A stretch of DNA of 64,000 nucleotides from positions 1,922,001-1,986,000 of the forward strand of contig CP075497.1 in assembly GCA_021613535.1 (NCBI GenBank). Direction: 5' to 3'. Shown in pieces: positions 22,267 through 35,931 of the stretch. Under the pieces are notes generated by a model. It saw only the letters and a list, made by a program, of their open reading frames with translations. It was not told where the DNA came from and made no database searches. A program made the translations under genes and the position numbers. The number at the start of each line of letters is the position of its first letter. Position 1 is the first letter of the stretch. This DNA is from Adineta vaga (lineage: Eukaryota > Animalia > Rotifera).

Positions 22267-23498
22267 TTAAAGCCAAATCGGTTCACCTTGTCGAGGGAAA
22301 ATGTAATTGTACTTAGAATTCCTTTCATTTTGTAATTGTTCGATGATTTTTTCACGACTTCCTTGTTCTGGTTTGATGTGTGTTATAACAATTGTAACAT
22401 TTTCCATTGAATGATATGATTGTAGAACATCTAATTCTTTTACAAGCCATTTTGGTGTTAAATGTCCAAATAATAAATGATCAGGACGTTCATTCGGATA
22501 TGAAACTTCAATAAAAATTGCTTTTAATTGATTAGCAACAACCAATGGACTCATAGCTTTCCATAATTGTTCAAGATATCTTGGTGAATAAGTTTGATTA
22601 TTAGCTTGAACGATTTTTTCAACATCATCCGGACCTGTATCACCCAAATAAAGAATTGACGATTCATTTACATCATGACGCGAGATAAGAAATGCTGAAC
22701 TTAGAAATGGACATGTATGACATAAACGAAAGATTCGTACATTCAAATTGGTATTTGGTATTGAGATTGAATTTATTGATAGAGGATCTAAGATTTGATA
22801 ATTATACATCTAATTAAAGCATAAAAAAATTCAAGAAAAAGATTATTTTAATGTTTAATTTACTTTTAAACCAGTTGGACCAAAATCTGCCCATGCTTGA
22901 TTATTAAAATAATCATCATGAATAATTTTCATTGTTTCATTTAATCCAAAAATTGTCTTTCCAGCTTTATCATTCGGAGAATTAAGAATAAATCCACTAA
23001 TATGATCAAGATGTCCATGTGAAATAAAATAACCTTTGATTTGTTCTTGAATAAATCGTTCAGCAGTAACATTCGTTGATGGAAAACATTTCTTTTGAAT
23101 TGCTATTCTAAATAAAACAAATGATTTGATAAATTTTTTTAATAAAATTTTTTCTATTTACTCAATTCCATGACGAAGTGTACCACCATCAAGTGATATA
23201 TAAATAGAATCTGGTGTATCATCATTCACTGTTGTAAGAATATAAGAAGAAAGATTACTTTCATCTAATCCACCACTTGTACCCAATGGTATAACATAAA
23301 AGGAATAGAATTTCGATTTGGTGGACTCCGTAGATGTTGATTTAGTATTAGTAACAACCAAAACGACTGTCAAAATTGTAAAGAATAGTATCATAATACT
23401 GAGAAAAAAAGAAATTGATTTCAATGAATATTTGTGAGATATACTACTTACCTAACAATGATACAAATACCAGTTGATTTTGTGAGATTAAATGCCAT
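22267..23498 (-). CDS. Class II cyclic-nucleotide phosphodiesterase (metallo-beta-lactamase fold; CpdP/PdsA/Pde1 type) with N-terminal signal/anchor; 4 exons; HGT candidate
   Basis: PLGTSGGLDESNLSSY, LDGGTL, YFISHGHLDHISG (class II HxHLDH signature, in exon 22864-23107), YLGDTGPD, AIFIEVSYPN..LFGHLTPKWL, THIKP. Confidence 0.9.
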
Positions 23499-25235: not shown

Positions 25236-26973
25236 TCACTGTTGATTAATAGGCGTCGGTTTCTTAAAAAGACCTTCTCCAGATGACTTTGGTACAGGAT
25301 CAAATGATATAAGATTACCAAAGAGAATATGTTGTGCAATTGGAAATTTATCTAAAACCTATTTCAAAATAAAATTTTTATTTTAATAAACTTATTTGAA
25401 AACGAACTTCTCCATAATACATTTTCAACATTCCTTGATTAACTTTCGACCAATGTGCAACATTTGATATATCATAAAGTGTACTTGAATGTTCGAAAAA
25501 AGGACCTGTTTTAACTTCATTTATATATTTAATTGCACCTAAATATAAATAATCATTGAATAAATCTCGATAAAATCGTTCATCAATTGCTTGTTTAGGT
25601 TCAATTGGACCATCATCGTTTAATTGTGATGAACCCCAAAGAAATGGTAAAAATTGATAATCATCTAAACACCATTGACCTTTCGATCCAGCTGGTTCAA
25701 GATAATAAGTTCGTTGTAATTTTCGACATAAATCTAAATAACTATTTTAAATAATCCAAAAAATACAGATCATTTTTAAGAAATAGAAAGAAAAAACGAT
25801 TTTACCGTGCAAATAATCTCAATACAATTGCTCGACTATCTTGTTCAGTCAATGCTTCAATTTTACATAAACATAAAAGAAATAATGCAAAAGCTAATTC
25901 ATGACCTAGAAAACAAAAGAAAAGTTAAATCATTCTATTCGTTTTCAATAGAAACCTGTTCCATAATCTAATCGTGTACTATTTCCAAATGAATCGCATA
26001 AATATCCATTTAATTCTTCGATATATTGATGATATTGTTCTGGTAATGCTTCTTTTAATAATCGTTCACTTTCCTTAAAATAAAAGAATTGACTTTTATG
26101 GGTGACTTTTGTTTCTCAATCAATGAAAGAAAAAAACCTGTTCAAGTTTTGTATGCCAATCACGATAACCAGCATCACCAAAACGTGATCGACCTTTTGG
26201 TGGACATTGATCAATAAATGTATCAAGTTGATTAAGTAAGTTTATCAATTTGTCAAGAGTCTATGCTTGAGAAAAATTATTCATAGAAGATAATAATCAA
26301 AAGAATTTCATTATTTCACATACCGGTGAGATTGGAATAGAATCAGAGTTTTTCAAACCATGAACTGATCGATTTAATGATTGAACAAATAATGTATATT
26401 CACGATATGCCTAAAATTACTTATACTCATTGAACAGAAATAATATGTTTAAGAGTAAAGATAGTCTATGATGTAGCTATACTTTACCAGAGACTGAACT
26501 TATCCTCTCTTTGTTTTCTCATGTGTGACCACTTCTATATAAGTCGCGTTGAATGAAGAAAAAAAGTACGATTGTGAGCGTGCAGATGACATAATCTATC
26601 ATCACATCGAAAGACATAAACAGTTACTCTCGTAATTCGTCAGATATCCTCAGATAGAAAAGAAAAACTTGGAATTCTTTAGAACGAATCGATCTTTTAT
26701 TGATTATGAATATTCTAATACCAAATGTATCAATATACATCAGGTTCTTTTAGAGTGTGTCTTCTATTAAATGTCAAATTCAAGATCTAGAAATCCACTT
26801 CATCTCACGTCTGATTTCCTTGAAATTTCTACGAAGACGACAGACAATTATCTAATTGTACACATGAATCTTACCTTTGAATCTTTCCAAGCTTTCATCA
26901 TTGAAATATCTTTAATTTTAGTCACCGGTTTTTGTGCCGGTGTAAGATTATTGTCAGCTTTTGAATCTGACAT
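25236..26973 (-). CDS. PTPA: PP2A phosphotyrosyl phosphatase activator; 7 exons, not captured by the ORF track
   Basis: SRFGDAGYRDW, DSFGNSTRLDYGTGHELAF, RKLQRTYYLEPAGSKGQWCLDDYQFLPFLWGSSQL, KTGPFFEHSSTLYDIS..WSKVNQGMLKMY..EVLDKFPIAQH. Confidence 0.95.
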
Positions 26974-27055
26974 TCTATGATCTAAAAAATGAATATTAAT
27001 CTATATAATATTTTTATTAAAAAATAAAAACAAAAGCAAAATAGATAATTTTTAT

Positions 27056-28868
27056 TTACATCCACACTTTTACTCGTTCATTTCCATAATCAATCTGGAA
27101 TTTATCTTTATCTTTCAAACGTTCAATTGAATGTTCAATAAGATATTGATATAATTGATTTTTATCTCGATCAATATCTTCTGATAATTGTCCATACATA
27201 CTAAGAACGATTAATCTTGAAAAATAGTTTATTATCAATGATATTATTGATGATTTGATTAATAATTTTGAATTTCGTAAATCAAAACAAATATGATCAA
27301 CTCGAAAAAATATTCGAGCAATTGAATGAATATGTTCACTTGTTAAATCATCGATTGAAGTATTTTCAAAGCGAACACATAGAATAACAACACGTCGAGA
27401 AAGAAGATAATACAAAAGAAGTGATTGATCATCATCAATAAGTAATTTATATAAATAATCAAAATCAATTGAAAGTGCAGAAAGATTAGGAGCAACTGAA
27501 AGAATCTTTTCCATATATTGCGTATCCGGTGGAGTACCTTGAATTGAAAGAAAATCAAGTCGATTTAGATCAGGAAGAATAACTGGTGATTTTATTGGAT
27601 CTTGATTTCCTATCGAACAAAACGAAAAATAAGAACTTTGGCAATTTAATCAATAAATTTTTACTTGGTGGTAATGTTCGCATTGATATAATTAAATCGA
27701 GAATCTGTCTACAATTTTGAATAATACCAAACATTTCCGCTAAAGCAATTGTATCATAAATATGCACATGTCGAACATTCTTATAAACTTGACTATTCAA
27801 TTTTGTCGACATATTTTTATAGAATAATGAACGTAATGATAATCGATTGGATTGATAATTTATCGTATGTAAAAATATTCGTTTATCATTTTCACAAATC
27901 GAATATTGAATTGGTATTGACTTCCACGATTGAATGGCTTTGTTTGCATCGAATTCGTCATCTAAATTCGTTGGTTGATAACAAATACTATAATCAAATT
28001 TCTTGATTAATGATGGAAGATATGATAAAACATGTTCACCATTAACAAGTGAATAATCATGACTCACAAGTATGAAAGAAACATTTTCTAAAACCAATGA
28101 AATATTGATTAATGCTTTGAAATCGTCAACAGTTGAAAACCAACTCATTGCATAGACATGTAATTCTTTTAAATGAGAGAAATATTGTTGATTGTTGGAA
28201 AGTTTTGACCATGGTCGTTTAAATGTAATATGAAGTTTTTCGACATTTGGAATTAAATGACAAAGTTGAAAAAGATCTTTTGTTGTTTGTAATTCAATAT
28301 TTAATTGAATAATATTCAAAAATTGCTTATCATATTGTTGATCTTCATTAATTAAACCGAATGAATCACATTCATGATCAAATATAACATGTGTTAAACG
28401 ATTTTCATTGGTTTGTAAAATTTTCTCTAAAAGATTTCGATTTTTTATTGAATCAGTTAAATCGAGTGCTTGAATGATTAATCGATGAAAATGTTTCATG
28501 TTATGTAATGTATCAAGAAATACGATAAGCTTCTCATCGGTCCAATTGACTAAAGTTAATTTTTCTAAATTTTCACAAATATGATTTGTTGAAAATAAAT
28601 GAAGAAATAACGGAGATTCCAATTCAAAGATAACTAAAGAACGTACGGTTGTCCTTATTTGAGGAAGAATATTGTTAAATATATGAAGAAATTCTATATA
28701 ATGTACTCGATGAAGTGAAATATGTTGTCGATAGAAAGTTATACTCTGATTTAAACGAGAATTCAGACCATAAAATGCATAAAGAACATCACCACTATGT
28801 AAATAACGACAGATTTCTAATAACATTTCATCCGGAAGTAATTCTAATGTTGAACGAATTAAAGACAT
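27056..28868 (-). CDS. F-box-like / degenerate LRR protein (lineage-expanded family); 2 exons
   Basis: LELLPDEMLLEICRYLHSGDVLYAFYGLNSRLN N-terminus, LxxLxL repeats, IFLHTI motif; intron ~27613-27664. Confidence 0.8.
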
Positions 28869-28995
28869 ACTTATCTAAAAGATTAAATACTTCCTATCAT
28901 AGAATTTTCAATAGTTAGTTTATGTTAGATTTAATAAAAAAAAGATGTTAGAAAAACTTTTTAAAGACTAAATGAATAAAAAATGTTATCACTAT

Positions 28996-29905
28996 TCAAT
29001 ATGGAATTGATTTGCCGTTAAAATCCAAGAATTTGCCATTATCTTCCAATGATAATTTATCAATTGCTTGTAACATGCGTTTTACTGATTCAGTTTTTGT
29101 TAAAAAATGTGCATCTTTTGGAAATAGTTTCTTATATTCATACATCATTTGTGTATTTACAACACCTGGTGACATAGCAATGAATAACAATGGATTTTCA
29201 TCCTTTTTCAATCCACATATGGAATTTTCATCAACTGGTTGTCGGCCAAATTCTAATGCGAGATTTTTTGTTGCCATATTTAATGCACATTTTGATAAAC
29301 GATAAGCATACCATCCTCCTACACGATTATTACCAATTGAAGCAAGTTCAGCTGATACATTGACAATGATGGATGAATACGGAGCATTCGAACCTGGAGA
29401 ACCAAAGGAAGATCGACCTCGTTTTAACGCATTTAATAAAATTTTTGTAACCAATATTGGTCCGACAACATTAACTTGATAGACATCATTTAAATCAATA
29501 CTAAGAACATCATTTAATGATGTTTCAACACGATTAGATGGATGCCCTTTTAGAGAAAAACATAAATCGAAATCAAGTAATAAAATATTTCATGTTTTTA
29601 CATATATGTGCACAATTAATTAACATATCAAGTCCACGTTCACGTTTGAGATCATTTAAACAATCGTCAACTTGTTTACCGAATGTATCGAATTGATCTT
29701 GATATCGAACATCTAATTCTAAAACATCTAAACGATGTTTGGAATGTCTTAAATATTCTTTTTGTAATTCAGAAAGACGATCAACAGCCATTTTTTGACA
29801 TGTAGCAATGACATGTGTTGGTGCTGGACGTTTTAATAATTGTCGAACAAATTCTAATCCAATACCACTCGATGCACCTTGAATAAGAACTGTTGCTTTT
29901 GGCAT
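28996..29905 (-). CDS. Short-chain dehydrogenase/reductase, C-factor (CsgA)/sniffer-like; 2 exons
   Basis: VLIQGASSGIGLEFVRQLL (Rossmann), LINCA, GGWYAYRLSKCALNM (YxxxK), PGVVNT, DNGKFLDFNGKSIPY. Confidence 0.88.
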
Positions 29906-29940
29906 GACGAAGAACTGTCTATCTGAAATAAACAAGATTT

Positions 29941-30750
29941 TTATTGAATCATTCGTCGCTTTCGTCCTGAAAATGGTAAACGTTGAAATCTCTGTACATG
30001 TTTACGACGAAGAACATCTCGAATTTCACAAGGATGTGTCGATTGATAAACTTTATCCATAAGATTAAGAAGAAGTTCTTTGAGAAGAAACAACGATATT
30101 TCTGGTAGAGAAAAATCGTCATTCGAACGAGAAGATTTTGATAAAGAAATTTGATATAGATCAAGCCAATGAAGAATATCCATTGCAGATAATGAACGAA
30201 TACTATTAAACGAAGAATGTTGTTGTTCAACAAATGTTAAATAAGCTTCACAAGTTAATGCATCACTTTTATAATAATTATCAAGACGAGCATATTGACG
30301 AGAACGTTGAATATCTAAAACCTATTAGACAGAAAACAAAGAAGGGAAAAAAATTGAAAAAAACTAATTTACCTCATGTTGATCAAGATGAATATTGAAT
30401 TGTCGACATATTCGTTGAAATCGATCAGATATCGTTGATTTTTTGTCTTTAACATCATTTAAATCTTGTTGTTGACAACTTGATCGATCTTTTGTTTGAA
30501 CAAATTGTTGAAGTCGTTTTAAACTAACTTTCTTATGTCTTGATATATATACAAGTGTTATTAACATAGAATTTCGTTTATTCATCAATTGATAATGTTT
30601 AAGACAATAATTTCGAAGTTGTTCACGACAATATTCATTGATATAATCAATGGAATTTTTTGGAAGAGAATAACCATTTCCATACATTCGAAGACAAATA
30701 TCGATTACATTCTCGAAAACATCTTTTTCATTGACTTTTTTCAATGACAT
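29941..30750 (-). CDS. SUPT3H: Divergent SPT3/SUPT3H-like SAGA subunit; 2 exons
   Basis: KKVSLKRLQQFVQTKD, YLTFVEQQHSSF, WLD, EISLFLLKELLLNLMD and THPCEIRDVLRR parallel SUPT3H KKKLRRLLKYM..D, YAEFCESRQLSF, WLD, EILAYLAYETVAQLVD and IQPCHIREAIRR. Confidence 0.65.
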
Positions 30751-30783
30751 GATGATTTATCTGAAGAAAAAAAAGAAAATTGT

Positions 30784-32133
30784 TTAAAACCAAATTTTAA
30801 AATCAATTTCATCACATTCTGTTTGAAATTTTCCAAAAAAATTACTTAAAAATTTATTATCAACAAGCCATTGATATGGATTACGACGGATTTGCTTAGA
30901 TATAAAACCTCGGATAATCACAGATACTAATAGATGAGTTTGAAAATATTGAAAAAATAATAGAAGAAGATATTCAACTGAAAGACTATTCGGAATTTTA
31001 CTTTCGAGAATAGGATATGACATATCAATAATAAACATGGTTAAATTGGATGAAGAATTTATAATTTCTTTTAGTAAATGAGACTCAGTTGAACAACCAT
31101 CGATTGATAACCATCGAAGTTTATTTAATCGAGATAATGATATGGATGTTTTCGTATCTGGTTTATCATTATTTGTAACTAAAAATCAAAGATTTTGTTC
31201 TTTCGAAATGATTGAAAATAAGAATCTTGACTTACTTAAAAGTGTCTCGTCTACTTCAATGGCTAAATCTTCAATATTATTACAACAATTTATTGCAATA
31301 CATGTTTCACTGAATGATGTAGCATTAAATAATAACAATTCGTGGACATGACGATTATAACGACCGTTCTTTTTTGTTTATAGTTTTTACAAATGAAGAA
31401 TTTACATCCAAATAAGAAAATTTATAGGGAATTGTATGAAGAAATATTTGATTTTTATTTTCAGCGAGTAAACAACAAACAGGAAAAGGTGTTGATGCCC
31501 ATGATGCGGTTATACCATCGACAGATTCAAGATATTCATTAGGTTCATATTCTGTACAATAATTGAATTTTTGTAAAGTATTCTTTGGTAAAATCGCAAG
31601 AAATTCTTCTCCATTAGATAATCGAATATCTTGAGTAAATCTATTCAATGAAAGTTGTTCAAGAAATGGCATTTGTTTAATCAAAGAATCGACTTCATTA
31701 AAATTCCAACAACGTCGAAATGATTCAATTCGAAATTCAATTAAATATTTCATTAAGATCATTTGATCAAATTCAACAATTTCATCTTCAGGTTCTTTAC
31801 CAATAACAAGATTCATTCGTTAAATATTCGGTATTAATTTCCATAAACCCTTCGATGACCGAAATGAAAATGAAAACGTTTTCCTAAAAGATCTGTCCAA
31901 TTAACATTGATGGATAGTGAACGAATTGTAGAACCAATTTTTGGTAAAATATTTAAACAAAGATATTCAAATTGAAGATAATTTGTTAGACGAAGAATGA
32001 CATGTTGACGATAAGTTAGAATTGCACGATTTAAACGAGAATTTCAATTAAAGAATGAATAAAGTACATCTGATGAAGAGAGATATTGATAGATTGATAA
32101 TAATAATTCATCAGGTAATCTTTCTAAATTCAT
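30784..32133 (-). pseudogene. F-box-like/LRR pseudogene, paralog of 27056..28868
   Basis: MNLERLPDELLLSIYQYLSSSDVLYSFFN*NSRLN (TGA at 32044-32046); LWKLIPNI*RMNL (TAA at 31820-31822); frameshift in the T-run near 31370-31375; two apparent internal deletions relative to the paralog. Confidence 0.8.
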
Positions 32134-32543
32134 AGATCAAAGGATGGATTTAGAAAGAAGTATGATTTCTTTATAATTGAGTGACGGCTCAAACAGACTA
32201 CATTTCTATTGGTTGGAAATAACCATTGAGAAAATAGGAAACCTCCAATAAGATTGTTTTTTATTTTTAATGAATTTCTTATCTTTAAATAACAAAATTA
32301 CAAATATCAGAATGATTTTCTTCTTAAAAAACTAATTAAATAAACGAATGAATGATTTTCATTGAATTTTATTGGTTTAATTGACACGAGATAAATAAAT
32401 AGATAGAAGAAAAAATATCAAAGCAAATATATGCAAGAACGGAGAGAAAAAAAAAGAACTGATCTCTTTAGTTGATATCAAAATATTTGTCTTGAGGAGT
32501 CTTTTAGATAGTTTTTCGAACATTCGTTATTTTACATATAATA
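32134..32543. promoter_or_regulatory. Probable bidirectional promoter between two divergent same-strand gene clusters
   Basis: 410 nt between divergent ATGs; ATTGG/CCAAT motifs near 32208 and 32244. Position-based inference. Confidence 0.45.
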
Positions 32544-33860
32544 ATGGGTCGCGATCGTTCACGTTCGATGTCTTCAACTTCTTCGTAAGTTTTATTTTTG
32601 TTTTGTTGTTTGGAATCATAGTGAATTATTTTTTGATTTTCAGTGGACGTGGCGTTCAGTCATCAACATGGGATGGTCATACGGGTTATCGTATTCATGT
32701 ATCTGATTTAGCACCTGGAATTCAACGAAAAGAAATTGAACGAGTTTATAAAAAATTCGGAACGATTAATGAAGTTTGTGATTGAATGAAATAGAATGAT
32801 AATTTGACTTTGAATGAACTTAGATATGGGTGGCAATCAATCCTCCGTGTTTTGCTTTTATTAATTTTAAACATCGATCTGATGCTGAAGAAGCAATGAA
32901 AGAAACAGATGGAACGTAAGATAAAGAATTGAAGAATCAATCGTTAATTATTAAAAATATATTGTAGTATAATTGGTACAAGTCGTGTTGGTGTTAGTTG
33001 GGCACGAACTCGGACATATGGAAGTCGAAATTTTGGTGGTCGTAGAGGAGCATATGGTTCATTTCGACCTAATAGTGGATATCGACGAAGATCAAGGTAA
33101 GCAGAAGCAGCTTATGAAGATCTTTCGGATAGGTTTTACTTTTTATTTTGAAAATTGAAGTCTTTGTGTGTTTGATAAAAGAAAACTTTCATTTATTGTC
33201 CACTTAATTTTGATTCTAGTAGCTTCGCGCTTTCTCGAATCATGATATGGGTGTGATGTTTTGATGAGATAATGATGATCAGATGGTCTTTTTCGGTTTT
33301 TATACAACTGATGACTATTGGCATCGGCTTATGTTTTCTCATTCGAGTAATTCGTGGAAAAAAACTATTTGCTTTTTTCTTCTTGGTTTTGATAATGAAG
33401 AATTTGAAAAAGAAATATTTACATTTGTTGTAACGTGGATCACGTGGGTAACGATGCTCAGTTAAGACCAATAATATGGATGGAAAGTTGTAAATTATGA
33501 ACATTTGATCTTTTGATTTTTTTTACTTTGAATAGAAGTCATTCACGCGATCGAAAACGTCGTTATAGTCGATCACGATCACATGGTATTAATTAGATTT
33601 TATTCTCAATTCAATAAATTTTTCTCTTTCAATTAGATCGTCATCATCGTCGAAGTAATTCACCACGTGATCGAAAACGTAAACGAAACCAATCTCGATC
33701 ACGTTCAACATCACGAGGTCAATCACGTACCTCAGTTCCCAATGAAAATATCGACAATTCACACGCTACTAATGAGTAAATACAACTGAAACAACAAAAA
33801 CTCACATGTTTCTATTTAAAATATTCTAGTCGATCATCAGTAGCTGTTCTCAATGACTAA
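32544..33860 (+). CDS. SR splicing factor, SRSF3/SRSF7-like (RRM + RS domain); 7 exons
   Basis: YRIHVSDL..FGTINEIWVAINPPCFAFINFKHRSDAEEAMKETDG (NPPGFAFVEF-type RNP1), followed by RS/RD repeats. Confidence 0.85.
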
Positions 33861-33999
33861 CGGCAGGTGTTAAACCTGATAATAATCTTCATATATATTG
33901 TCTTGTTCTTCTCTTTTTTTTACAAATACATATAATAAATAACTGACTTTTATGTGTTCTAGATATATTAAATCTATTTATTTATTTATTTATCTAATC

Positions 34000-35098
34000 A
34001 TGTCGAGTAAAGATCGGTATAATATTTTTCCATCGCGAATGTAAGTCGTTTGTTGAATTGATGTTAATCGATTGTTTTATGTTGACGGTTTTTCTAGGGC
34101 TCAAACGATAATGAAAGGTCGTTTGAAAGGTGCTCAAACAGGACATAATTTATTGAAGAAAAAAGCTGATGCATTGGCAATTCGTTTTCGATTAATACTT
34201 AAGAAAATTATTGATGTAAGAAGAAGAAGAAGAAAAGATTGTGAGCAACAAATGAATTTTTCTTTTGAGGATATTTTAGACAAAAACGTTAATGGGTGAT
34301 GTAATGAAAACAGCTTCATTTTCATTGGCTGAAACAAAATTTTCTATGAGTGGAGATTTTAGTCAAGTTGTTATTCAAAGTGTTAGTAAAGCACAGATTA
34401 AAATTCGTACAAAACGAGATAACGTAGCCGGTAAGTTCAGTCTTTGAATCAATCATCGTGTGATTATCTGTTTTGTATTTGTTCAGGTGTTATTTTACCA
34501 TCATTCGAATCATTTCATGATGGAGGAGATTGTAAGTAACTTGTATTGATGTGAGAGAAATGAATGTTTATGGATTGATTTAGCATTTGAATTGACTGGT
34601 TTGGGTCGTAGTGGTACACAATTACAAAGATTAAAGAAAAATTATGGTGAAGCTATAAAAATTCTTATTGAATTAGCAACATTACAAACATCATTTCTTA
34701 TTCTTGATGATGTTATTAAAGTAACAAATCGTCGTGTCAATGCTATTGAACATGGTTCGTTATTTTGATTTTAACAAGAAAATAATAAATGATCTGTTTG
34801 TTTCTGTTTAGTTATTATTCCGAAAATATCGCGAACAATTACTTATATTGTATCTGAACTTGATGAAATGGAACGGGAAGAATTTTATCGGTAAAAATTA
34901 ATCTGATTTTTGTTTTAGGAAAGATCTCTCTTTCTTTGTTTTAGTTTGAAGAAAGTTCAAGAGAAGAAAAAACAAATTCGTGCACTTCAAGAGAAAAAAC
35001 GAGCTGAATTAATTGAAATTGGTCTTCTAAATGGTCAAGAAGAAGAAGCACCTAATATCTTAGATCAAGAACATGATGAAGATCTTCTTTTTCAATAA
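34000..35098 (+). CDS. ATP6V1D: V-type proton ATPase subunit D; 7 exons
   Basis: [110 protein letters not shown]. Confidence 0.97.
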
Positions 35099-35307
35099 TC
35101 TTTTCCTTTTTTTGGTCATTCCATAATCCCTTTACTTATTTTGATTATACAATTTCTTTTTAAACATTGTCTGTATGTGATAAACTGCAATTATCACCCT
35201 TTTTAAGTGTAATTTTCCTTTGTCTATTAAATATGTATGTCGACAAAAACGAGAAAAAGATAGAAACAAATATATGCATTTAATTCAACAAATCTATGTA
35301 TTTATAG

Positions 35308-35931
35308 ATGCCAGCTCCAATGTTTCTACGGGGTGCAGCCCCATGGCGTAATACATTATCATATTTAGAATCAGGTTCAATTATATTCCGTCCCATCGTT
35401 CGAGTATTTACATTGAATTATACACTTGATAAGCCTGATTCTGATGGTTTACGTCGTTTCATATTTTGGCATTTAGCTCAAATTCAATATAAAAATCCAA
35501 GTGTTCAATGTGTTCAATTTAAAAATACAACACCAACGCCATTTGTCTCATTTTATTTAACACGTCCGTCGATTGAGAATGAAACAAATGCAGATAAAGA
35601 TGATTATGAAATTGTTCATATGGATTGTTATAAGAAGAGTTCAAATGAAATTCATGATTCAATTCGACGTGTAATGGGTAAAAGTGAATTACAACAACGT
35701 ATTGATTCGGAATTAACAGCACGATTAGAAAATCCAGCAAATTTTGGAAAAGATTGTGCACATTACTGTATGTGTTTAGTTTATGGACAAATGTCATGTC
35801 CTGGAAGAAAGAAATTACCGGACTATCTTCGTGGAAAATATACAAGATATAAAATTGATGAACTTGAAGATATTCGAAAGAAAATCAGTGATAATGATGC
35901 TTTGAAAGATTATTGGAACAGACCGTTTTAG
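35308..35931 (+). CDS. MRPS25: Mitochondrial small ribosomal subunit protein mS25 (intronless)
   Basis: RNTLSYLESG, GLRRFIFWHLAQIQYKNPSVQ, TPTPF, NPANFG..CAHYCMCLVYGQMSCP..LP..LRGK. Confidence 0.93.
   Translation: MPAPMFLRGAAPWRNTLSYLESGSIIFRPIVRVFTLNYTLDKPDSDGLRRFIFWHLAQIQYKNPSVQCVQFKNTTPTPFVSFYLTRPSIENETNADKDDYEIVHMDCYKKSSNEIHDSIRRVMGKSELQQRIDSELTARLENPANFGKDCAHYCMCLVYGQMSCPGRKKLPDYLRGKYTRYKIDELEDIRKKISDNDALKDYWNRPF

Follow-up and report, generated by a model that had tools for sequence, protein, structure and literature searches.

Gene content and arrangement

The window analysed here is a 64,000-nucleotide stretch of the Adineta vaga genome (GCA_021613535.1, contig CP075497.1, positions 1,922,001 to 1,986,000), and all coordinates below are positions within it. 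Between 25236 and 32133 lie five consecutive, co-oriented minus-strand genes of four unrelated kinds, with separate reading frames and Pfam families. The features are as follows.

32208..32249 (-), conserved promoter-like element with three CCAAT-type boxes, in both orientations, at the head of the unit
32170..32175 (-), TATA-like hexamer of inferred function, with the likely start region at about 32145-32134
30784..32133 (-), gene 1, F-box/LRR-type gene, broken in the assembly; intron 31235-31179
30761..30762 (-), junction 1 acceptor AG
29941..30750 (-), gene 2, SUPT3H/Spt3-like, 252 aa; intron 30372-30322
29923..29924 (-), junction 2 acceptor AG
28996..29905 (-), gene 3, short-chain dehydrogenase (SDR, C-factor-like), 284 aa; intron 29601-29547
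28875..28876 (-), junction 3 acceptor AG
27056..28868 (-), gene 4, F-box-like/LRR-type protein (F-box2), 585 aa; intron 27664-27610
26982..26983 (-), junction 4 acceptor AG
25236..26973 (-), gene 5, PTPA (PP2A activator), multi-exon, with AATAAA-type signals at about 25195-25185 after the stop

The gene assignments in the first-pass annotation hold. Gene 1 has an F-box-like N-terminus, gene 3 matches adh_short, and gene 5 matches PF03095. The Spt3-like assignment of gene 2 rests on a Pfam TFIID-18kDa match that is below the cut-off (E 3e-4) together with a profile hit to yeast Spt3 (E 2e-5). Gene 4 is a distant paralogue of gene 1, at about 32% identity in the orthologues. A search for a duplicate copy of the unit in the genome matched SUPT3, SDR and PTPA once each in this haploid assembly.

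The stop-to-ATG gaps are 33 (30783-30751), 35 (29940-29906), 127 (28995-28869) and 82 nt (27055-26974), and the four acceptor AGs lie 10, 17, 6 and 8 nt before the respective ATGs. AATAAA overlaps the SUPT3 stop (29945-29940) and the F-box2 stop (27056-27051). RNA-confirmed introns at this locus are 51-57 nt, so the two shortest gaps are below intron size. Only 6.6% of ATG triplets in the window have a pyrimidine-rich YAG within 20 nt upstream, against four of four downstream genes, and gene 1 does not. The arrangement of gaps, acceptors and signals described in the first-pass annotation is confirmed, with one refinement concerning gene 1.

In the assembly, gene 1 carries a TGA at 32046-32044, lacks about 310 nt at 31851/31848 and about 145 nt near 31012, and changes frame near 31369, while its orthologues are intact at 584 aa. 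The gene is transcribed with the stop. However, RNA-seq run X11 has one contig that leaves the assembly at 31845 into the segment missing there, and another that lacks a base at 31369, suggesting a second allele that carries the deleted segment, although no full intact frame was seen. The earlier designation of gene 1 as a pseudogene is thus probably true of one allele only.

RNA ends at the gene junctions

We examined assembled RNA contigs, rather than reads, from RNA-seq runs such as X1, X3 and X11. In run X3, poly(A) tails begin at 29922, 28874 (a 20-nt tail) and 26981, each the first base after an AG that had been predicted beforehand, a coincidence with a probability of about 2e-5 if tails fell evenly in the gaps. 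At junction 1, a gene-1 contig ends on the base after the AG (30760), with no tail displayed. All three tails come from this one run. Oligo-dT mispriming can be rejected, as no A-run follows the tail sites. Junctions 1 and 3 have no AATAAA-like hexamer within 40 nt, while junctions 2 and 4 have AATAAA 17 and 31 nt upstream, so ordinary cleavage could land there. The AATAAA at the F-box2 stop lies about 69 nt above the observed tail.

Downstream contigs begin on the acceptor AG at three junctions. The SDR contig starts at 29924, although this start could also come from the allele difference at 29925, and F-box2 contigs start at 28876 in both X1 and X11, the latter with four unaligned letters in front. 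Depth arithmetic puts the start of the X1 PTPA contig at 26983 +/-1, and the splice from exon 1 to exon 2 of PTPA is seen as a loose end at 26874. As the rotifer spliced leader (SL) ends in AG, an SL-bearing read would align two bases into the acceptor, but no SL letters were displayed at any junction. Further loose ends, at 30762, 27424, 31687 and 31972, have no reference.

Spliced SUPT3 and SDR sequences occur in one contig in two studies (X1 and X11). Read-through was seen at junction 2 only, and a contig is not a single molecule. The 5' 58 nt of SUPT3 are not covered in any run. Cis-splicing into the acceptors had been named in advance as an observation that would count against an operon; in the 5.7 kb examined, only four joints were listed, all ordinary introns, and none enters any of the four AGs. 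Contigs at the head begin at 32132 (X1) and 32134 (X11), with none in 32135-32400. DNA contamination is unlikely, since introns are skipped and 32135-32400 is uncovered.

The genome has 59 matches to the published 23-nt rotifer SL exon; all those read are followed by a GT donor, and they share one exon sequence apart from single changes. In a search for SL on related cDNA contigs, L031, a spliced SDR cDNA, has a 5' end that is a fold-back artefact without SL, and L032-L034 are genomic. A metagenome scan with the SL exon alone gave mostly SL genes and chance hits, and one SL-capped contig of another gene (L142), in which the SL is followed by AT (n=1).

Conservation of gene order, acceptors and the head element

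Gene order is kept in A. steineri, A. ricciae, Rotaria sp. and metagenome bdelloids, although gaps reach 396-625 nt in some relatives, and Didymodactylos has another gene between SUPT3 and SDR. The acceptors are also kept across bdelloids. AG|AT is found in 21 of 22 junctions in one set and four of five in another (25 of 27 in total), against a background of 15% and none of the four cis introns of the unit.

The CCAAT-type head element has one match in the window and none in 100 shuffles, although the pattern was derived from the loci in which it was found. It is present 52-82 nt before the first ATG in the loci L025, L026, L028 and L029/L030 and, with a 2-nt longer spacer, in L036. In all it is seen in six lineages, and it stands directly before SUPT3 where gene 1 is absent. 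No conserved CCAAT box was found before the downstream genes. A genome-wide pattern search for this element used a spacer too short to match the present site and is uninformative, and a bacterial promoter scan does not apply to this DNA.

Interpretation

The explanation that we favor, with reasonable though not full confidence, is that one RNA polymerase II promoter (CCAAT boxes at 32249-32208, start near 32140) drives a polycistronic pre-mRNA through F-box1, SUPT3, SDR, F-box2 and PTPA. In this view the 23-nt rotifer SL would be spliced on at the acceptors and give each downstream mRNA its cap, while the upstream piece, ending in AG, would be polyadenylated, most simply after release and debranching from the trans-splicing reaction, and the broken gene-1 allele would still work as the transcribed lead-in for the other four genes. 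The tails at three acceptors, the 5' contig edges on the AG, the read-through at junction 2, the SL genes in the genome, the synteny and the head-only element are observed, while the presence of SL on these mRNAs, the co-transcription of all five genes, the function of the promoter and the chemistry of the 3' end are inferred.

The operon reading proposed in the first-pass annotation is thus supported, although its mechanism needs changing. It had proposed 3'-end cleavage followed by SL addition, having placed AATAAA at two of the stops, but the data do not show cleavage at AATAAA with SL addition further down; instead, the poly(A) site is the acceptor itself. This would be a zero-spacer operon of the Ciona or C. 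elegans SL1 type rather than one with separate cleavage and SL addition.

We considered the possibility of a hybrid operon, partly co-transcribed, in which one or more downstream genes (most plausibly PTPA or F-box2) also have an internal promoter inside the upstream gene and are trans-spliced from an outron at the same AG. Hybrid operons exist in C. elegans, read-through was seen only at junction 2, and junctions 1, 3 and 4 vary more in length among relatives. We regard this as unlikely, as there is no conserved CCAAT-type element before the downstream genes, and the tails still fall on the acceptors, so transcription must cross junctions 2-4. Less likely still are five independent genes in a compact genome, each with its own promoter in the upstream gene and an outron, with the tails being by-products of trans-splicing of read-through RNA or ordinary cleavage that happens to fall on AG|A. 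More than half of bdelloid transcripts carry SL (PMC1925144), so an acceptor before an ATG is common by itself, and AATAAA is at a usable distance at junctions 2 and 4. Against this stand the exact coincidence at three junctions, none of which has spacer DNA, the lack of a signal within 40 nt at junction 3, and a promoter-like element that is found only at the head and moves to SUPT3 when gene 1 is lost.

It is very unlikely that the AGs are cis-splice acceptors for 5' exons or fusion transcripts, with no trans-splicing involved. The A. ricciae annotation does join genes 1 and 2 in an 828-aa F-box1+SUPT3 gene model, and a cis exon ending in AG would also make contigs start on the AG, but no joint into the four AGs was found in the region examined, the tails at the acceptors would be unexplained, and the other relatives have separate full-length frames.

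A broader reading is not excluded, although we hold it only tentatively, as somewhat less likely than not. Bdelloid rotifers may have, independently of tunicates, conserved multi-gene operons in which the trans-splicing reaction itself makes every internal mRNA 3' end, with no spacer, often no AATAAA and a fixed AG|AT acceptor, so that middle genes would get both ends from successive trans-splice events. The first gene could then decay into a mere lead-in and be deleted while the promoter passes to the next gene.

A 2021 paper lists rotifers among groups with SL trans-splicing but no reported operons (PMC7986045), and our literature searches found no rotifer operon study. This locus gives four junctions in a row in a laboratory species, three with tails at the acceptor, and makes testable a question left open in Ciona, namely whether one transcript can yield both the upstream and the downstream mRNA when they share one bond. 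It also matters for annotation, given fused gene models such as that in A. ricciae, and for knock-out design, since lesions in an upstream gene or promoter may affect SUPT3 and PTPA, each found once in the haploid assembly.

Comparison with known systems

C. elegans SL2-type, Oikopleura and Schistosoma operons are polycistronic units resolved by SL trans-splicing, as is inferred here, but they keep a spacer between tail site and acceptor (about 100 nt, 23-30 nt and a median of 99 nt, respectively), while here it is zero; nor do the SL matches that were read give evidence of a dedicated SL2. The C. elegans SL1-type operons (as described in PMC1488885 and PMC12582326) share with this locus the absence of intercistronic sequence and, by inference here, the use of a general-purpose SL. 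They are a minority class in that organism, with AATAAA in the characterized cases, while two of the four junctions here lack it.

The chaetognath Paraspadella gotoi (PMC12460157) belongs to the closest relatives with reported operons (Gnathifera), and its operons also contain housekeeping genes and use no operon-specific SL. Those operons were defined by a distance under 250 bp plus SL reads, with no junction type given in the parts consulted, and the SL sequences are different.

The operons of Ciona intestinalis (Satou et al. 2006, PMC1488885) also consist of unrelated co-oriented genes in which the upstream poly(A) site directly abuts the downstream acceptor, the tail following AG; unresolved dicistronic RNA has been seen, AATAAA is often missing, and there is one SL type. 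We found no description of a +1/+2 AT preference in the parts of that work consulted, and SL on the A. vaga mRNAs has not been directly seen. The phylum and the SL are different, and Ciona operons are mostly of two genes, while the unit described here has five, with four junctions.

Gene content and spacing
The window covers positions 1922001-1986000 of contig C6 in a 100.8-Mb, six-contig assembly of the bdelloid rotifer Adineta vaga. We searched this genome with the published rotifer SL exon (PMC3795323, Table 1), allowing up to 2 mismatches, and found 59 matches on five contigs, while the reversed control gave none. Every copy that we read is followed by a GT donor and a conserved 3' part, and many of these SL RNA genes are arranged as back-to-back pairs about 130 nt apart, although the genomic first base is T where the published exon has G.

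The observation made in the first-pass annotation holds at every coordinate. The gaps between the five genes are 33, 35, 127 and 82 nt, the acceptor AGs stand 10, 17, 6 and 8 nt before the ATGs, and AATAAA lies over the stops of genes 2 and 4. When the exons are joined, genes 2-4 give open frames of 252, 284 and 585 aa with introns of 51-55 nt, and RNA confirms these introns and a 57-nt intron in gene 1. In database searches made exon by exon, genes 1 and 4 have F-box-like N-termini, gene 3 matches adh_short and gene 5 matches PTPA. The SDR protein (gene 3) is 100% identical to an NCBI protein named for A. vaga. Gene 2 is weak by itself (TFIID-18kDa, below cut-off), but a profile of six bdelloid first exons finds only yeast Spt3 chains in the PDB (E 2e-5 and 6e-4). 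A pyrimidine-rich YAG within 20 nt precedes 6.6% of ATG triplets in the window, all four downstream genes, and not gene 1. Within 25236-30750, SUPT3, SDR and PTPA each match once in the haploid assembly, with no duplicate block found, while a roughly 150-nt element in PTPA intron 1 (26486-26642) matches at least five other places of the genome at 71-91% identity and appears to be a small dispersed repeat.

RNA ends and read-through
We compared 5,701 nt of the locus with assembled contigs from four runs (X1, X3 and X11 among them); the assignment of these runs as RNA is provisional, although introns are skipped. The contig ends at the four junctions are as follows.

Junction 1 (gene 1 to SUPT3): a gene-1 contig ends at 30760, without a displayed tail
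Junction 2 (SUPT3 to SDR): untemplated tail of 10 nt at 29922 (X3); a contig begins at 29924 (X3)
Junction 3 (SDR to F-box2): untemplated tail of 20 nt at 28874 (X3); contigs begin at 28876 (X1, and X11 with four unaligned letters in front)
Junction 4 (F-box2 to PTPA): untemplated tail of 11 nt at 26981 (X3); the X1 PTPA contig start is placed by bin depths, in our arithmetic, at 26983 +/-1

Each of the three tail positions, all from run X3, is the first base after the predicted AG, an A, so the tail starts at AG|A, and the end at 30760 is the same position at junction 1. If tails fell evenly within the gaps, three such hits would have a chance near 2e-5, although this is a rough model. On the 5' side, the contigs begin at the A of the acceptor AG, and since the SL ends in AG, SL-bearing RNA should align exactly that far. 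This evidence is indirect, as the SL letters themselves are not displayed on the contigs, and an allele difference at 29925 could also break a contig at 29924. X1 and X11, which come from two studies, hold spliced SUPT3 and SDR in one contig, so RNA crosses junction 2. Cis-splicing into these sites had been named beforehand as an outcome that would count against the operon, and in the stretch examined no splice joint enters any of the four AGs from upstream DNA. Gene-1 contigs start at 32132-32134, and nothing covers 32135-32400. Loose ends at 30762, 27424, 31687 and 31972 belong to contigs that match briefly and run on into other sequence, some of them in two runs; these are probably unrelated or paralogous transcripts, or the second gene-1 allele.

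We also considered the 3'-end signals. Within 40 nt above the tail site there is AATAAA at junction 2 (17 nt) and at junction 4 (31 nt), and nothing of the kind at junctions 1 and 3. The AATAAA at the stop of gene 4, which the first-pass annotation had pointed out, is about 69 nt away and is not the one that fits.

Gene order in other bdelloids
The full order F-box1 > SUPT3 > SDR > F-box2 > PTPA is present in A. steineri and in one metagenome bdelloid, and parts of it are seen in several other relatives.

Gene order and intergenic gaps (nt) at the related loci
A. steineri: all five genes; 155, 51, 396, 147
L035 (metagenome bdelloid): all five genes; 234, 70, 625, 169
A. ricciae: the first four genes; 40, 35, about 203
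Rotaria sp. Silwood1: the first three genes before the contig ends; 177, 61
L036 (a further related locus): the first three genes before the contig ends; 106, 30
L032 and L034 (related loci): SUPT3 > SDR > F-box2
L029/L030 (related loci lacking gene 1): SUPT3 > SDR > F-box2 > PTPA; 29, 128, 114
Didymodactylos: SUPT3, then a deaminase-like gene, then SDR at 174 nt

With one selection rule for all, every downstream gene had a YAG acceptor within 30 nt of its ATG, followed by AT in 21 of 22 cases and in 4 of 5 more, against 15% for pyrimidine-rich YAGs in the window and 0 of 4 cis introns of the unit, although these junctions are related and the counts are thus not independent. The one SL-capped contig found in metagenomes (L142), a 1.2-kb cDNA of an unidentified gene that starts with the rotifer SL and runs on into non-SL sequence, also continues with AT. 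The A. ricciae annotation fuses F-box1 and SUPT3 into one 828-aa model across a 40-nt gap with a stop, and the Didymodactylos SUPT3 model (431 aa) also looks fused to something upstream (L028:1937-4587; L027:1-4043).

Promoter-like element and neighboring genes
A 39-nt element with CCAAT-type boxes (32246-32208) lies 52-82 nt before the first ATG in five lineages and, slightly longer, in a sixth. Where gene 1 is absent, the element stands before SUPT3. It stays with this unit although the divergent neighbor changes, being an SR-type RRM gene here and ATP6V1D in the related loci L028 and L029. No such conserved box precedes the downstream genes. That the element is the promoter is inferred from its position and from the general properties of NF-Y boxes. 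Two further features flank the unit.

32544-35931 (+): a second head-to-tail run diverging from the same intergenic region, SR-type RRM gene > ATP6V1D > MRPS25-like, with gaps of 139 and 209 nt and AG|AT acceptors 37 and 0 nt before the ATGs
22267-23498 (-): a class II phosphodiesterase gene following PTPA at about 1.7 kb, with an AG|AT acceptor 12 nt before its ATG

The order of the plus-strand run is kept in the related locus L025 (the first two genes in L026), while the RRM gene is absent in L028 and L029; it is likely a second operon on a two-way promoter. The phosphodiesterase gene also follows PTPA in L025 and L029, and is possibly a sixth member of the unit or a separately trans-spliced gene.

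The first gene
The assembled copy of gene 1, called a pseudogene in the first-pass annotation, is 1350 nt against 1803-1818 nt in relatives, with a stop at codon 30, about 310 and 145 nt missing, and frame changes. It is transcribed with the stop. However, X11 also has a contig that leaves the assembly at 31845 into letters that we read by eye, in comparison with the orthologue translations, as the end of the missing segment, and a contig with 15 differences that lacks one base at 31369. No close second copy exists in the haploid assembly, so this is probably the other allele or one from another strain, although these contigs do not show it to be fully intact.

Interpretation and comparison with known operons
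The feature described in the first-pass annotation is real, and it is well supported as a zero-spacer SL operon. We think it most likely that a single polycistronic transcript is cut at four AG|A bonds, with the SL added downstream and a tail upstream. The tails at three acceptors, the RNA crossing junction 2 and the order kept in relatives are observed, while the presence of the SL on these mRNAs, the role of the 39-nt element and the extension of one transcript over all five genes are inferred. It may be that trans-splicing itself makes the upstream end, as the exact coincidence of tail and acceptor and the missing signals at two junctions would suggest, but this is not shown.

Other arrangements cannot be ruled out. 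A hybrid operon is possible although unlikely, a set of independent genes with outrons is less likely still, and cis-splicing, for which we saw no joint into the four AGs within the stretch examined, is very doubtful.

SL trans-splicing is known in bdelloids, where it affects over 50% of transcripts (PMC1925144), but operons were stated to be unreported in rotifers in 2021 (PMC7986045). A 2025 chaetognath paper names rotifers in a sentence on trans-splicing and operonic transcription, but we found no rotifer operon data there, nor any published operon in this phylum, although our search left out most subscription journals and absence is not proven. The kind of system, on the other hand, is already known. 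The tail directly after the acceptor AG and the absence of a signal at some junctions match the description of Ciona operons, in which the signal is often absent (PMC1488885), and the unit resembles both these and the SL1-type operons of C. elegans, while it does not fit the C. elegans SL2 type.
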